DNA from: Scyliorhinus canicula
Taxonomy: Eukaryota
NCBI RefSeq assembly: GCF_902713615.1
Contig: NC_052156.1
Location: forward strand, 21,603,287-21,667,286
Length of the DNA stretch: 64,000 nt
Direction: 5' to 3'
The stretch's first letter is position 1. Each line of letters opens with the position of its first letter. Under the pieces are notes generated by a model, which made no database searches, was not told where the DNA came from, and saw only the letters and a list, made by a program, of their open reading frames with translations. Both the position numbers and the translations under genes were made by a program. Below are positions 24,313 through 31,044 of this stretch, in pieces.

Positions 24313-27216
24313 CTACACTATGCCCTTATCATCCATATGCTTATCCAATAAAATTTTAAATGCCCTCAATGTTGGCGAGTTCACTACTGCTGCAGGTAGG
24401 GCATTCCAGGGCCTCACCACTCTTTGCGTAAAAAACCCACCTCTGACCTCTGTCCTATATCTATTACCCCTCAATTTAAGGCTATGTCCCCTCGTGCTAG
24501 CCACCTCCATCCGCGGGAGAAGGCTCTCACTGTCCACCCTATCTAACCCTCTGATCATTTTGTATGCCTCTATTAAGTCACCTCTTAACCTTCTTCTCTC
24601 TAACGAAAACAACCTCAAGTCCATCAGCCTTTCCTCATAAGATTTTCCCGCCATACCAGGCAACATCCTGGTAAATCTCCTCTGCACCCGTTCCAAAGCT
24701 TCCACGTCCTTCCTATAATGAGGCGACCAGAACTGTACGCAATACTCCAAATGTGGCCGTACTAGAGTTTTGTACAACTGCAACATGACCTCATGGCTCC
24801 GGAACTCAATCCCTCTACCAATAAAGGCCAACACACCATAGGCCTTCTTCACAACCCTATCAACCTGGGTGGCAACTTTCAGGGATCTATGTACATGGAC
24901 ACCGAGATCCCTCTGCTCATCCACACTACCAAGAATTTTACCATTAGCCAAATATTCCGCATTCCTGTTATTCTTTCCAAAGTGAATCACCTCACACTTC
25001 TCCACATTAAACTCCATTTGCCACCTCTCAGCCCAGCTCTGCAGCTTATCTATGTCCCTCTGTAACCTGCAACATCCTTCCGCACTGTCTACAACTCCAC
25101 CGACTTTAGTGTCGTCTGCAAATTTACTCACCCATCCTTCTGCGCCCTCCTCTAGGTCATTTATAAAAATGACAAACAGCAACGGCCCCAGAACAGATCC
25201 TTGTGGTACGCCACTCGTAACTGAACTCCATTCTGAACATTTCCCATCAACTACCACTCTCTGTCTTCTTTCAACTAGCCAATTTCTGATCCACATCTCT
25301 AAATCACCCTCAATCCCCAGCCTCCGTATTTTCTGCAATAGCCGACCGTGGGGAACCTTATCAAACGCTTTACTGAAATCCATATACACCACATCAACTG
25401 CTCTACCCTCGTCTACCTGTTCAGTCACCTTCTCAAAGAACTCGATAAGGTTTGTGAGGCATGACCTACCCTTCACAAAACCATGCTGACTATCCCTAAT
25501 CATATTATTCCTATCTAGATGATTATAAATTGTATCTTTTATAATCCTCTCCAAGACTTTACCCACCACAGACGTTAGGCTCACCGGCCTATAGTTACCG
25601 GGGTTATCTCTAATTCCCTTCTTGAACAAAGGGACCACATTTGCTATCCTCCAGTCCTCTGGCACTATTCCTGTAGCCAATGATGACCTAAAAATCAAAG
25701 CCAAAGGCTCAGCAATCTCTTCCCTGGCTTCCCAGAGAATCCTAGGATAAATCCCATCAGGCCCCGGGGACTTATCTATTTTCACCTTGTCCAGAATTGC
25801 CAACACTTCTTCCCTACGCACCTCAATGCCATTTATTCTAATATCCTGGGTCTCAGCATTCTCCTCCACAATATTATCTTTTTCTTGAGTGAATACTGAC
25901 GAAAAGTATTCATTTAGTATCTCGCTTATCTCCTCAGCCTCCACACACAACTTCCCACCACTGTCCTTGACTGGCCCTACTCTTACCCTAGTCATTCTTT
26001 TATTTCTGACATACCTATAGAAAGCTTTTGGGTTTTCCTTGATCCTACCTGCCAAAGACTTCTCATGTCTCCTCCTTGCTCGTCTCAGCTCTCTCTTTAG
26101 ATCCTTCCTCACTTCCTTGTAACTATCAAGCGCCCCAACTGAAACTTCACGCCTCATCTTCACATAGGCCTCCTTCTTCCTCTTAACAAGAGATTCCACT
26201 TCTTTGGTAAACCACGGTTCCCTCGCTCGACCCTTTCCTCCCTGCCTGACTGGTACGTACTTATCAAGAACATGCAATAGCTGTTCCTTGAACAAGCTCC
26301 ACATATCCAGTGTGCCCAACCCTTGCAGCCTACTTCTCCAACCTACACATCCTAAGTCATGTCTAATGGCATCATAATTGCCCTTCCCCCAGCTATAACT
26401 CTTGCCCTGCGGGGTATACTTCTCCCTTTCCATCACTAACGTAAAGGTCACTGAATTGTGGTCACTGTTTCCAAAGTGCTCACCTACCTCCAGATCTAAC
26501 ACCTGGCCTGGTTCATTACCCAAAACCAAATCCAATGTGGCCTCGCCTCTTGTTGGCCTGTCAACATATTGTGTCAGGAAACCCTCCTGCACACATTGTA
26601 CAAAGAACGACCCATCTAATGTACTCGAACTATATCTTTTCCAGTCAATATTTGGAAAGTTAAAGTCTCCCATCACAACTACCCTGTTACTTTCGCTCTT
26701 TTCCAGAATCATCTTCGCCATCCTTTCCTCTACATCCCTAGAACTGTTAGGTGGCCTATAGAAAACTCCCAACAGGGTGACCTCTCCTTTTCTGTTTCTA
26801 ACCTCAGCCCATACTATCTCGGAAGAAGAGTCCCCATCTAGCATCCTTTCCGCCACCGTAATACTGTCCTTGACTAGCAGCGCCACACCTCCCCCTCTTT
26901 TGCCCCCTTCTCTGACCTTACTAAAACACCTAAACCCCGGAACCTGCAACAACCATTCCTGTCCCTGCTCTATCCATGTCTCTGAAATGGCCACAACATC
27001 GAAGTCCCAGGTACCAACCCATGCTGCCAGTTCCCCAACCTTATTTCGTATACTCCTGGCATTGAAGTAGACACACTTCAAACCACCTACCTGAACACTG
27101 GCACCCTCCTGCGAAGTCAAATTTGTGCTCCTGACCTCTATACTCTCAATCTCCCGTACCCCAAAATTACAATCCAGGTTCCCATGCCCCTGCTGAATTA
27201 GTTTAAACCCCCCCAA
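24313..27216 (-). CDS. CR1 ORF2p: APE endonuclease plus reverse transcriptase (no AUG at its 5' end)
   Basis: 967 open codons; APE motifs FNARS, SETW, YRPP, GDFN, LDL, SDH; RT motifs NYRPVSL, QHGF, DFSKAFD, GVPQGSVLGP, FADD. Confidence 0.97.
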   Translation of the reverse strand: MGGFKLIQQGHGNLDCNFGVREIESIEVRSTNLTSQEGASVQVGGLKCVYFNARSIRNKVGELAAWVGTWDFDVVAISETWIEQGQEWLLQVPGFRCFSKVREGGKRGGGVALLVKDSITVAERMLDGDSSSEIVWAEVRNRKGEVTLLGVFYRPPNSSRDVEERMAKMILEKSESNRVVVMGDFNFPNIDWKRYSSSTLDGSFFVQCVQEGFLTQYVDRPTRGEATLDLVLGNEPGQVLDLEVGEHFGNSDHNSVTFTLVMEREKYTPQGKSYSWGKGNYDAIRHDLGCVGWRSRLQGLGTLDMWSLFKEQLLHVLDKYVPVRQGGKGRAREPWFTKEVESLVKRKKEAYVKMRREVSVGALDSYKEVRKDLKRELRRARRRHEKSLAGRIKENPKAFYRYVRNKRMTRVRVGPVKDSGGKLCVEAEEISEILNEYFSSVFTQEKDNIVEENAETQDIRINGIEVRREEVLAILDKVKIDKSPGPDGIYPRILWEAREEIAEPLALIFRSSLATGIVPEDWRIANVVPLFKKGIRDNPGNYRPVSLTSVVGKVLERIIKDTIYNHLDRNNMIRDSQHGFVKGRSCLTNLIEFFEKVTEQVDEGRAVDVVYMDFSKAFDKVPHGRLLQKIRRLGIEGDLEMWIRNWLVERRQRVVVDGKCSEWSSVTSGVPQGSVLGPLLFVIFINDLEEGAEGWVSKFADDTKVGGVVDSAEGCCRLQRDIDKLQSWAERWQMEFNVEKCEVIHFGKNNRNAEYLANGKILGSVDEQRDLGVHVHRSLKVATQVDRVVKKAYGVLAFIGRGIEFRSHEVMLQLYKTLVRPHLEYCVQFWSPHYRKDVEALERVQRRFTRMLPGMAGKSYEERLMDLRLFSLERRRLRGDLIEAYKMIRGLDRVDSESLLPRMEVASTRGHSLKLRGNRYRTEVRGGFFTQRVVRPWNALPAAVVNSPTLRAFKILLDKHMDDKGIV

Positions 27217-28124: not shown

Positions 28125-31044
28125 CACCTCTAGATTTAAAAAAACACAAGAAAAAGAAAAAGGAAGAGCTTACCTGATATTACCACAAACCCTGCTCCCG
28201 CTGAAAGGTAAGCAAATTTAAAGGCACTCACTCACCTTCACGACAGGCCCCTGCTCCCGCTTCCCAACCACCGTGGGGTGGGGGGGTTGGTTAGAGGAGG
28301 AGGTAGGGTGGGAAACACTCACAATTTGAGAGGAATGGATATAATAGGGCTAGAGCATCCATGTGACAGTTAGTTTGTTTCTGGTGGTATTATGAGGAAT
28401 TTTGACAAGAACCCGAGTTACATTGTCCTCTTTGATAAAATGTAATTAGACCTTTAATACACACTTGAACCATTGACACTCAAGGCTGGGAACAATGCAG
28501 CACTAGTCAACCTATGTTACTAATTTTCCCAAGTAATAAACCCCTCTAATGGTCTAACATTAATTGCATTATACTGATTTGTATAGTCTGTAGAATTTCC
28601 TAAAGTCATAGAATTTACAGGGCAGAAGGAGGCTATTCGGCCCATTGAGTCCGCACCAGCCCTTAGAAAGAGCACCCCACCCAAGCCCACCTTTTTGGAC
28701 ACTAAGGGCAATTTAGCATGGCCAATCCACCTACCCACACAACTTTGGACTGTGGGAGAAAACCGGAGCTCCCGGAGGAAACCCAGGCACAGGGAGAACG
28801 TATAGATTCTGCACAGACAGTGACCCAAGCTGAACCGCAGTTGATCTTAGAATGAGTTGAAATGTTGCCGCAGTGACCTCGAGTTGAGAGAAAAATCCAG
28901 AGCTTCTTCTCAAGGCACAGCCTTCTGACTCAGATGCAGTTTAATAGGCATCAGTACCTCAAGCAAGAGGCCATTATCCATGTGATCCTGGACCGGTGTT
29001 AGTAGGCTATTTGATGCCATGAGAATGGAATCTAATTCTGTGCCCAGTCATTGACTATATGTTCAACAGGGGTCACCAGAGTAGGGAAATCCCTACTTAG
29101 TTTCTTCGTTCCTAAAGTAGGAGCATGGGAAATAAGAGTTGGCCATTCGACCCCTGCTCCACCATTCAACTGGATGGCTGATTTTCTGCCCATTTGTAGT
29201 GGCTATATAGCTGCTATGGCTGCGATCAGTTTGCTCAGTAGAAATAGCAAGTTTTTAATGGTATGGAACGTTTGGGGAATGATTAGATTTGTGGTGTAAT
29301 TTGACTAATAGTAAATTAATTGCAAACAGATTTGGTATAGATGCCACATCGTTACCATCTTCTCCACTCCAGTAATTACTACAGCTGTTTGCTCATCTTC
29401 CATTTCGCTCGTTTTATACATCCTTGCCTTATCTCGTCTTTCTCAGTTTAGACCTTTCATGACAATGTAATTACCTATCTTTATTAGTTTATTAATGGTC
29501 AAAAACTGGAATACTTAAATGTTCATTCGATATGGACAGGGCAGCACAGTAGCACAAGTGGACAGCACTGGCTTCACAGCGCCAGGGTCTTAGGTTTGAT
29601 TCCCTGCTGGGTCACTGTCTGTGTGGAGTCTGCACGTTCTCCCAGTGTCTGCGTGGGTTTCCTCCGGTTTCCGCCCACAGTCCAAATACGTGCAGGTTAG
29701 GTGGATTGGCCATGATAAATTGCCCTTAGTGTCCAAAAAGGTTAGGAGGGGTTATTGGGTTACGGGGATAGGGTGAAAATGAGGGCTTAATGTGGGTGCA
29801 GACTCGACAGGCCGAATGGCCTCCTTCTGCAATGTATGTTCTATTGGATATGACTAAATGCTGCACGCATAACAGTTTGAAGGAAACCCAAAAAAATGAC
29901 TGAAATCTTTCACAACTTATTCATTTAAAGTTAGCAAAAAAATTCAAAATAAGCCATTGTTCTAATTTTAAACAAAGCTCAACAGCATGCAATTTGACTT
30001 ATTAACTTAACATTTACACTGAAAATCTCTGAAGGATATTAAAGTGAAGCAGTAGAAGCACATAACAAGTGACTCGTGCCAAAATGAAGATGTTTGAGTT
30101 GGAAAGCAAATGGATAATTGATTCAATAACAGGAAATAAAACATAACATTCAAAAGCTAAATTCTAACCAGGCAACAGTGGGCAGTAGAGTACTCCAGGG
30201 AATCAGTGCTGGGTCTTCTGCTGTTCGCAATCTATAATAACTTGTATTCATAAAGCACCTTCAAAGTAGTAAAACATTCCAAGAACTTCACAGAAGCAAG
30301 AGTCAAACAAAACTAACAATGTTGTTAAAACTCATGTGCGTGTTTGTTGATGATATAAAGTTGTAATGTTCAGAGCAAAGAGGTAAAATTTAGTACAATC
30401 CACAGATGATGACAACCGGGCAGATGAACTGCAAAAGATTTTTAATATTGAAAAGCATAAGGCATTACATATTAGTGGCAATAACAGCAATAAGATTAAC
30501 ATATCTAGAATTAATTATTCCCATTCAATTAATTTTTTAACGGTTTAGTTGAAACTGGGAACTCATGCGAGAGTCTCCAGCTTACTTTGATGTGCTGCCC
30601 TAGTACATGTGTGTGTTTAAAAGCACCCTGTTGACCAATGTAAAGAGCAGTAGTACAGATGGCAACCTGACCATTCAATGCCAAAGTGTCCTAGATCAGT
30701 AGAAATGACACCTTTTCACAATTAGTGAAACTCATGCCAGTGGTCGTCTATCATTTGCTGCCATAAAAAGTCACAGAAGCGACAAAATCTCCATCCACTC
30801 ACAGTATAACAAAATTCATAATGTGATTCCAAACACAGTTACAATATGGTCTATTTTTACCTCAATTAAAACATTAATATACAAGTAATGGAATAAAAAC
30901 AGAATAACTAAAATAATGACTAAGAATGTGGACTTTCCTGCCTAATTGACACTATGGTGGAAATATACAAATGATGAATTAATTAGAGACTGTTGTTTCA
31001 AACTGGAGTGTAATTTGGGAAAGACAAAGCAAGCACCAGTAGAA

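Follow-up and report, generated by a model that had tools for sequence, protein, structure and literature searches.

CR1-type LINEs are likely to express their second open reading frame (ORF2) by programmed -1 frameshifting at the slippery heptamer U_UUA_AAC, with a probability that is put at roughly 0.8. This reading rests on comparison only, and it has no experimental support such as a transframe peptide, a reporter assay or a ribosome profile. What the comparison establishes is the anatomy of the ORF1/ORF2 junction, the conservation of the heptamer at synonymous sites, the maintenance of its phase, of the adjoining stop codon and of ORF2 in the -1 frame, the replacement of the heptamer in sister lineages, and the absence of a conserved AUG.

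The element was found on the minus strand of a 64,000-nt stretch of DNA from Scyliorhinus canicula, hereafter called the window. Its ORF1 encodes a GDSL/SGNH esterase (Pfam PF13472, E = 7e-14), and Pfam together with an AF2 model gave the ORF1 layout as Cys-rich N-terminal strands, a long helix, a disordered linker and the esterase. In ORF2, Pfam recognized an APE endonuclease (PF03372) at residues 50-253 and a reverse transcriptase (RT; PF00078) at residues 534-756. A Cys motif and a coiled coil before the SGNH/GDSL esterase in ORF1, with APE and RT in ORF2, satisfy the criteria for the CR1 type, and the 3' terminus is a short tandem repeat, not poly(A), as expected of a CR1-type LINE. The closest named proteins come from sharks and rays, and bird CR1 is among the relatives too. 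The element is likely to be an intact CR1-type LINE; this placement is drawn from the domains, the ORF1 relatives and the 3' repeat, with a tree built from ORF1 only and no RT phylogeny. The window contains no further full-length copies, only RT and 3' fragments, and sequencing reads mapped to the junction revealed a very high copy number of the family.

The features of the element are listed below by their positions in the window.

28124 (ATG) to 27198, minus strand: ORF1, 308 aa plus the stop codon TAA at 27200-27198
27225-27223, minus strand: TAG in the ORF2 (-1) frame, the upstream bound of the overlap
27207-27201, minus strand: slippery heptamer T_TTA_AAC, in the X_XXY_YYZ phase of ORF1
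27200-27198, minus strand: ORF1 stop codon TAA, abutting the 3' side of the heptamer
27197-27191, minus strand: spacer TTCAGCA, 7 nt, conserved among relatives in length, not in sequence
27190-27181, minus strand: twin G-tract GGGG-CAT-GGG, beginning 10 nt past the heptamer, conserved; candidate frameshift stimulator
27162-27153, minus strand: second G-run pair GGGG-TAC-GGG, specific to this copy or lineage, its position not conserved
24313-27201, minus strand: ORF2 as a shifted ribosome would read it, 962 codons and a stop, comprising a linker, the APE endonuclease, the RT and a C-terminal region
26844-26842, minus strand: first ORF2-frame ATG, codon 125 by the count of the original prediction
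24240-24225, minus strand: short tandem repeat (TTCTATG) x 2.3, the 3' end of the element

A base-by-base check confirmed that the final codons of ORF1 are GGT TTA AAC TAA. ORF2 is the -1 frame (TTT AAA CTA ATT CAG), which opens just 5 codons 5' of the heptamer and is open from 27222 to its stop at 24315-24313. Since the TAG at 27225-27223 bounds the overlap, entry into ORF2 must occur within the eight codons at 27222-27199. The chance of a canonical heptamer in phase within this overlap was estimated by us at about 1-2% (1/512 per codon), and the complete arrangement (heptamer, stop, 7 nt, GGGG) was found a single time in the window, where 0.13 occurrences would be expected. The first ORF2-frame ATG lies 3' of the codons for the catalytic Asn of FNARS (27063-27061) and the Glu of SETW (26982-26980). 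The first G-run pair consists of GGGG at 27190-27187 and GGG at 27183-27181, and the second pair of GGGG at 27162-27159 and GGG at 27155-27153.

The original prediction, made from sequence alone, had claimed the phased TTTAAAC before the ORF1 stop with ORF2 in the -1 frame, and a first ORF2 AUG at codon 125, past FNARS and SETW; both claims held. Its inference of programmed -1 frameshifting, drawn from this single copy, is now strongly supported by comparative data, without experimental demonstration. It had called for an alignment of CR1 junctions for TTTAAAC and the -1 phase, and both proved to be conserved across lineages.

Junction DNA for the comparison came from a bird genome (L001, Rissa tridactyla, the only named species represented by DNA), from contigs of shark, ray and frog type (L082-L087) and from 80 metagenome-derived loci. 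A few families from a single metagenome sample supplied many of the compared loci as copies, which are not independent. Other hosts contributed 68 related junctions, of which 54 have exact TTTAAAC, and a stop codon follows it directly in 53 of the 54 (TAG in 36, TGA in 13 and TAA in 4). The heptamer, its phase, the adjoining stop and the -1 position of ORF2 are kept among CR1 lineages whose ORF1 shares 19-75% identity with that of the window, and the ORF1 tree has path lengths above 2 changes per site. The terminal Leu is encoded by TTA and the terminal Asn by AAC in 17 of 17 lineages, with T in the wobble position just before; by comparison, five codons occur at the other invariant Leu columns of ORF1, and TTA accounts for 11% of ORF1 Leu codons. 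The comparison thus shows that the heptamer is conserved beyond coding need across diverged relatives. Among the proteins, an x-L-N terminus is shared by 54 ORF1 homologues, some of which are named proteins of sharks, rays, frogs and birds, and in 53 of the 54 the variable x can be encoded by a codon ending in T. A single chimaera homologue (P0059) ends in ALNY instead, and groups of proteins with x-K-N and x-G-F were seen as well.

Two sister lineages, each represented by an intact element, carry other canonical heptamers at the same place and in the same phase. L033 has an intact ORF1 of 348 aa, an ORF2 open for 930 codons and G_GGA_AAC followed by TAG, and L090 has an ORF2 open for 761 codons and A_AAA_AAC followed by TAG; in both, ORF2 is in the -1 frame and the twin G-tract is present. 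The -1 ORF2 is open across the shift site in seven relatives with a long intact ORF2, and in every intact lineage the ORF2 frame is open from the heptamer through to the endonuclease. The start of this open frame lies 1-5 codons 5' of the heptamer in most lineages and 16-37 codons 5' of it in some. The spacer is 7 nt in 39 of 53 relatives, with an information content below 0.6 bit per position. An outgroup LINE of teleost type with an esterase ORF1 has one frame across a single TGA and an ATG just before the endonuclease. No relatives with an invertebrate-type ORF1 were found in the viral-contig scan.

The first ORF2-frame AUG shows no positional conservation. It is at codon 3, 4, 14, 22, 38, 43, 48, 121 or 166 depending on the lineage, and in several lineages it falls past the catalytic Asn. 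An AUG lies 2 nt past the stop in L001, L048, L059 and L076, and the UAAUG stop-start overlap was observed at the junction of L082 only. The window, L086, L002, the L022-type family, L033 and L090 have no near AUG. The junction of the window reads UAAUUC and its first ORF2-frame AUG is 121 codons downstream, so the stop-start overlap of SART1 type is lacking there. The frameshifting inference would have been undermined by a family AUG upstream of the endonuclease that only the window copy had lost; this was not seen, as L086, the closest relative with DNA (75% ORF1 identity), likewise lacks an early AUG. In lineages with an AUG 2 nt after the stop or with UAAUG (L082), termination-reinitiation could make a contribution.

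In the proposed mechanism, the majority of ribosomes would stop at the adjoining UAA and release ORF1p. A minority would slip back by one base, with tRNA-Leu moving from UUA to UUU and tRNA-Asn from AAC to AAA, and would then read on through CUA AUU CAG. The predicted product is a fusion of 1270 aa and roughly 140 kDa containing ...WGGLN-LIQQGHG..., analogous to Gag-Pol, and a low ratio of ORF2 to ORF1 would be fixed in this way. The adjoining stop, slow to decode, may help because the A site stays empty in the meantime; the G-tract would then lie 7 nt past the stop. The transframe peptide would be expected to contain GGLN-LIQQ because Leu and Asn are decoded before the shift; the sequences ...WGGLKLIQQG or ...WGGFKLIQQG proposed in the original prediction failed on this point, being incompatible with tandem slippage. 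That slippage actually happens, and its frequency, are inferred from sequence comparison.

Each of the 19 lineages examined has the twin G-tract that starts 10 nt past the heptamer, even L033 and L090, which are AT-rich. The tract is further from the heptamer than classical structured stimulators. It is possible that this element is the stimulator, but the role is inferred and there are no functional data. No conserved pseudoknot or stem-loop was found at the usual 5-9 nt, and an Rfam scan of the junction gave no relevant match. Per-lineage ViennaRNA folds, with and without quadruplex energies, were inconsistent and revealed no shared hairpin or pseudoknot, and the RNAalifold consensus of 13 copies of one family reached -3.2 kcal/mol with almost no covariation. 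The L008-type family has a strong local hairpin that uses the G-tracts; the other families have no such hairpin.

The original prediction had named four G-runs (GGGG, GGG, GGGG, GGG) and a weak hairpin as possible stimulators. All four runs are present, but only the first pair is conserved in relatives, and the hairpin did not stand, since the 108 nt from the heptamer on (27207-27100) fold no better than shuffles (z = +0.51). Folded into a quadruplex, the four G-tracts of the window would leave a middle loop of 18 nt; relatives have no second pair at that place. Four tracts of at least three G with loops of at most 7 nt were seen in no lineage, and L033 and L090 have two tracts in 70 nt. An intramolecular quadruplex was rejected as the general stimulator because the AT-rich lineages carry only two G-tracts. 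Neither the four-run quadruplex nor the hairpin is supported as a family-wide stimulator.

The main alternative is that ORF2 is translated by termination-dependent reinitiation or by AUG-independent initiation, as in the UAAUG coupling of SART1 or in human L1, with ORF2p made separately and TTTAAAC with its stop serving another role such as a termination context or a tethering site. Routes of this kind operate in the LINEs that have been studied (PMC2881922, PMC3894237, PMC5009743), the L082 overlap and the four lineages with an AUG 2 nt past the stop fit them, and the conserved G-tract often holds a UGGGA-like sequence. Such a sequence is reminiscent of the calicivirus TURBS motif 1. However, TURBS elements sit upstream of the restart site, whereas the CR1 G-tract sits downstream, and the near AUG is sporadic among lineages and absent in the window. 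Reinitiation also leaves unexplained why synonymous sites are frozen in the exact 0-frame phase and why TTT, GGG and AAA all obey the XXX-identity rule. This alternative is considered unlikely.

Two other explanations are weaker still. The heptamer could be kept only for a C-terminal Leu-Asn of ORF1p, its slippery character being coincidental, and the terminal Asn is indeed invariant in both alignments. Against this, the TTA and AAC codons are frozen in 17 of 17 lineages, together with the preceding wobble T, while other invariant Leu columns vary, and Gly or Lys takes the place of Leu precisely in those elements whose heptamer begins with GGG or AAA. The ORF1 tail is also unstructured in the AF2 model, in which the last helix spans 289-304 and the terminal G-L-N has pLDDT below 50; a protein-level reason for the conservation of G-L-N is unlikely because the tail is of low confidence beyond that helix. 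Coincidence is thus very improbable. The frame change could instead arise at the nucleic-acid level by polymerase stutter on the run of seven G (27214-27208) that abuts the heptamer in the window copy. This run is not conserved, as L082 has GGGGAGGA, L083 has GGGGCAGAC and bird-type elements have AGGGC, and transcriptional slippage at the run was rejected for this reason. Contigs from four Scyliorhinus canicula runs, of which three are guessed to be RNA, span the junction and show no indel there. The RNA label of the runs is a guess, and transcription of the element is not shown by them. Stutter retains very little plausibility, and programmed -1 frameshifting remains the preferred reading.

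A bolder reading is that X_XXA_AAC with an adjoining stop, a spacer of about 7 nt and the twin G-tract is ancestral to LINEs with an esterase ORF1 (the CR1 group) across animals, and that the G-tract is a new kind of stimulator, either a linear element read by a protein or an intermolecular quadruplex. This reading is tentative, and the odds are judged to lean against it. In its protein variant, the reader of the G-tract would be a host G-tract binder or ORF1p itself, the latter giving feedback on the ratio of ORF1 to ORF2. If the bolder reading is true, this would be the first natural -1 frameshifting driven by a G-tract and the first LINE clade with a Gag-Pol-like ORF1-ORF2 fusion.

The translation of the second ORF in bicistronic LINE RNAs has long been an unsolved problem, and the studied cases, human L1 and SART1, are reinitiation-like. 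No description of -1 frameshifting in CR1 was found in the literature searched; the search missed older key papers (Haas 1997, 2001; Kajikawa 1997; Kapitonov and Jurka 2003; Kojima 2005; Alisch 2006), and an earlier mention cannot be excluded. A major recoding review lists no -1 frameshifting that joins ORF1 and ORF2 in a LINE; among non-LTR elements it lists only the HeT-A gag, and TART and L1 are discussed as non-frameshift (PMC5009743). Natural G-rich stimulators were anticipated by the field, and none had been found as of that 2016 review (PMC5009743). CR1 dominates the retrotransposon complement of birds, crocodilians, turtles, snakes and cartilaginous fishes. If frameshifting is confirmed, CR1 ORF2p would be synthesized as a fusion with the esterase ORF1p, with implications for cis-preference, RNP assembly and association with membranes or lipids, and the ORF1:ORF2 stoichiometry would be fixed by a measurable mechanism. 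It would also provide a simple sequence criterion for potentially active CR1 copies and, 10 nt from a shift site, a naturally occurring G-tract element.

Among known systems, the coronavirus ORF1a/1b junction has the same U_UUA_AAC heptamer in the same phase, with the polymerase ORF in the -1 frame and a fusion that sets stoichiometry. It differs in being viral, in its three-stem pseudoknot about 6 nt downstream and in a 0-frame stop that does not adjoin the heptamer, whereas the CR1 junction, in a cellular LINE, has no conserved Watson-Crick structure, a twin G-tract at 10 nt and a stop that abuts the heptamer. The Gag-Pol of retroviruses and LTR elements and the domesticated PEG10 share the logic of a structural or accessory ORF1, a catalytic -1 ORF2 and canonical heptamers, and pol is in the -1 frame in many animal LTR elements (PMC5009743). 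The G_GGA_AAC seen in L033 is the heptamer of PEG10. These systems are of LTR class and use pseudoknot or stem-loop stimulators, in which they differ from CR1.

SART1 and human L1 likewise have a bicistronic LINE RNA with abutting ORFs, their ORF2 translation needs ribosomes that have read ORF1, and UAAUG is shared with L082. Human L1 shows that translation of a LINE ORF2 need not involve either an AUG or frameshifting (PMC5009743, PMC2881922). In these elements a separate ORF2p is made by reinitiation, whereas CR1 conserves the phased heptamer and the AUG is dispensable. The arterivirus PRRSV, whose frameshifting is stimulated by protein, has CCCANCUCC 11 nt 3' of its shift site (PMC5009743), and resembles CR1 in that a short, linear, unstructured and homopolymer-rich motif at 10-11 nt replaces RNA structure (PMC5009743). 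The PRRSV motif is C-rich, is bound by nsp1beta with PCBP and directs both -2 and -1 shifts, whereas the CR1 motif is G-rich and has no known binding partner. Sites of the luteovirus and dianthovirus type, for example G_GGU_UUU UAG of BYDV, have a 0-frame stop directly after the heptamer. These plant RNA viruses differ from CR1 in their adjacent and long-distance RNA structures, but the stop immediately 3' of the heptamer is common to both.

The window contains one full-length, uninterrupted LINE on the minus strand and no second full-length copy. Its ORF1 encodes a GDSL/SGNH esterase (Pfam PF13472, E = 7e-14), and its ORF2 encodes an APE endonuclease (residues 50-253) and a reverse transcriptase (residues 534-756), as indicated by Pfam. 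The closest named ORF1 relatives in the protein search are shark and ray proteins, from Mustelus asterias (79%), Stegostoma, Hemitrygon, Mobula, and Leucoraja. The short tandem repeat at the 3' end is typical of CR1-type elements. In the presumed 5' UTR (28125-28330, minus strand), two copies of CGGGAGCAGGG lie about 50 nt apart, and they are followed by a T-rich stretch adjoining the ORF1 ATG.

Features of the LINE and its ORF1/ORF2 junction
28124 to 27200-27198, minus strand: ORF1 from ATG to TAA, 308 aa
27225-27223, minus strand: TAG closing the ORF2 (-1) frame upstream
27207-27201, minus strand: T_TTA_AAC heptamer in exact X_XXY_YYZ phase, abutting the stop; ORF1 ends GGT TTA AAC TAA
26844-26842, minus strand: first ORF2-frame ATG, downstream of the FNARS Asn (27063-27061) and the SETW Glu (26982-26980)
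24240-24225, minus strand: 3'-terminal short tandem repeat, (TTCTATG) x 2.3

ORF2 lies in the -1 frame, reading TTT AAA CTA ATT CAG. Because this frame is closed upstream by the TAG, the passage of a ribosome from ORF1 to ORF2 is possible only within 8 codons. The chance of an in-phase canonical heptamer in so short an overlap is, by our estimate, roughly 1-2%, and the window holds one occurrence of the extended motif versus 0.13 expected. The original prediction, made from sequence alone, described the heptamer, its phase, the stop, the -1 ORF2, and the late ATG; all of these statements held when the sequence was re-checked. Its interpretation, programmed -1 frameshifting, is supported by strong comparative evidence, and on that evidence it is likely (probability about 0.8) that CR1-type LINEs reach ORF2 in this way. 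A G7 run (27214-27208, minus strand) abuts the heptamer, with another at 27240-27234; relatives keep neither.

C-terminal x-Leu-Asn was found in 54 ORF1 homologues, including named proteins from sharks, rays, frogs (Hyla and Leptobrachium), and a bird (Rissa); the sole chimaera homologue, Callorhinchus P0059, terminates in ...ALNY. Position x is occupied by G, T, A, C, D, S, Y, L, F or I, or in a single homologue by E, and in 53 of the 54 it holds a residue with a codon able to end in T. Junction DNA was collected from the bird element L001 (Rissa tridactyla), six shark-, ray- and frog-type contigs (L082-L087), and 80 metagenome-scan loci, which are mostly host DNA from one sample. Among the 68 loci containing the ORF1 C-terminus, 54 have exact TTTAAAC and 10 have a single-base variant, in line with decayed copies. 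A stop directly follows the heptamer in 53 of the 54 exact loci (TAG 36, TGA 13, TAA 4), and the endonuclease is in the -1 frame in intact copies. In one decayed copy (L003:3776-3806), 15 nt of the junction are duplicated in tandem (TTTAAACTGAAGGAT twice).

The terminal Leu is encoded by TTA and the terminal Asn by AAC in 17/17 lineages each. As a control, five different codons are found at the remaining invariant Leu columns of this alignment, and just 11% of all Leu codons in ORF1 are TTA. In the ORF1 tree, the shark element and the bird-type elements are separated by more than 2 changes per site, and the codons flanking the heptamer differ freely between lineages. In the AlphaFold model of ORF1p, built on a 23-sequence alignment, the last helix spans residues 289-304 and the terminal G-L-N has pLDDT <50; this predicted low-confidence tail argues against a structural need for Leu-Asn.

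The sister clade of the TTTAAAC group in the ORF1 tree, represented by L033 and L090, shares the phase, the adjoining stop, and the -1 ORF2 with different heptamers. In L033, ORF1 is intact (348 aa), the junction is CAG GGA AAC TAG (G_GGA_AAC), and the ORF2 frame stays open over 930 codons, up to the contig end; in L090 the junction is TCA AAA AAC TAG (A_AAA_AAC), and the ORF2 frame stays open over 761 codons. The X_XX identity rule is thus satisfied at a single position by three triplets (UUU, GGG, and AAA), as expected from selection for tandem tRNA slippage; it is difficult to account for in another way. At the protein level only, further relatives end in x-G-N (x = Q, S or L) or x-K-N (x = S or G). 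Among other esterase-ORF1 lineages (proteins P0127-P0175), x-K-N lies 3-18 residues before the end in 19 proteins (x = T, A, S, Q or R, always able to end in A), and x-G-F lies within the last 6 residues in 12 (x = L, E, M, W, Q, S or R, always able to end in G). The required third base can be supplied by x in each of these groups. The internal x-K-N and x-G-F ends hint at A_AAA_AAC and G_GGU_UUU sites, respectively, although only protein sequences are at hand.

Downstream of the stop, the spacer is conserved in length (7 nt in 39/53) and not in sequence. After it, every lineage has G4-7, 1-4 nt, and G3-6, and in almost all lineages with TTTAAAC the second tract begins 14 nt past the stop. This twin G-tract, the candidate stimulator, is retained even in the AT-rich L033 and L090 (34-40% GC). 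It is not explained by coding, because GGG predominates in every tract although any Gly codon would serve, and the reading frame of the tract is different in L086, the closest DNA relative of the window element. The four G-runs noted in the original prediction all occur in the window element, but relatives do not keep the second pair. No Watson-Crick structure downstream of the heptamer was shared across lineages in the folding comparison, and the downstream 100 nt of the window fold no better than shuffles (z = +0.51). An intramolecular three-tetrad quadruplex was also considered as a general stimulator and is ruled out, since AT-rich lineages have only two G-tracts in 70 nt.

Reinitiation at an ORF2 AUG is a rival explanation. 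An AUG lies 2 nt past the stop in L001 and in the loci L048, L059, and L076, and a UAAUG overlap is seen in L082; either would allow reinitiation there. However, the first ORF2-frame ATG is scattered among lineages, at 3, 4, 14, 22, 38, 43, 48, 121 or 166 codons after the heptamer, and it comes after the catalytic Asn in the window, L086, L002, and the abundant L022-type family. Reinitiation is therefore excluded as the general route, while a contribution in the few lineages with a near AUG or UAAUG remains possible. An outgroup teleost-type esterase-ORF1 LINE (L089:1200-1754) has ORF1 and ORF2 in the same frame with a single TGA between, the frame open across, and an ATG directly before the endonuclease. 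It may represent a readthrough or reinitiation design, unlike CR1.

Under programmed -1 frameshifting, the majority of ribosomes would terminate at the ORF1 stop and yield ORF1p, and a fraction would slip -1 on U_UUA_AAC, giving an ORF1-endonuclease-RT fusion of 1270 aa. The predicted fusion junction is ...WGGLN-LIQQGHG. The transframe peptides ...GGLKL and ...GGFKL proposed originally presuppose that the slipped codons are read a second time, which is not expected under the standard model. We infer that, when the A site is occupied by the stop codon, the G-tract would lie 7 nt beyond, at the usual stimulator distance, so the adjoining slow-to-decode stop may help the tRNAs in the P and E sites to slip. 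By the same inference, this and the standard route would give an identical peptide.

Contigs from four runs of Scyliorhinus canicula (three guessed to be RNA) span the junction with at most 3 differences and no indel at the heptamer, which is not evidence of transcription or translation; the copy number of the CR1 family in this species is very high. One contig in each of the runs X2 and X3 (guessed RNA) has a joint going back 33 with 6 inserted letters at 27174-27206, probably a variant copy with a small duplication. Several database entries containing CR1 ORF1 (P0008, P0034, P0070, P0072, P0109, and P0039) are likely to be artefacts. An entry named Pseudomonas aeruginosa SGNH hydrolase corresponds to a CR1 ORF1 of shark type located on a contig of 4 kb, which points to contamination. 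CR1 ORF1 pieces lie inside ray gene models named as RPS24, TMEM204, and GPR139 isoforms, and one Hypanus model passes from ...LN straight into the endonuclease.

Frameshifting in CR1 is undescribed in the full-text literature searched, which included a recoding review (PMC5009743), reviews of LINE protein biogenesis (PMC3894237 and PMC2881922), the esterase structure (PMC3905857), and CR1 surveys of 2014 and 2026 (PMC4316615 and PMC13343379). The search did not extend to Kapitonov and Jurka 2003 or to the first papers on chicken and turtle CR1, and an earlier remark on the overlap is possible. The -1 mechanism itself is already known; what would be new, as far as can be determined, is its use by a LINE clade with an adjoining stop and with a conserved twin G-tract replacing the pseudoknot. 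G-quadruplexes stimulate frameshifting in synthetic constructs, and the 2016 recoding review gives their use in nature as "not currently known" (PMC5009743). The geometry of the CR1 G-tract, 10 nt from the shift site, is similar to that of PRRSV, in which a protein-bound CCCANCUCC element lies at 11 nt.
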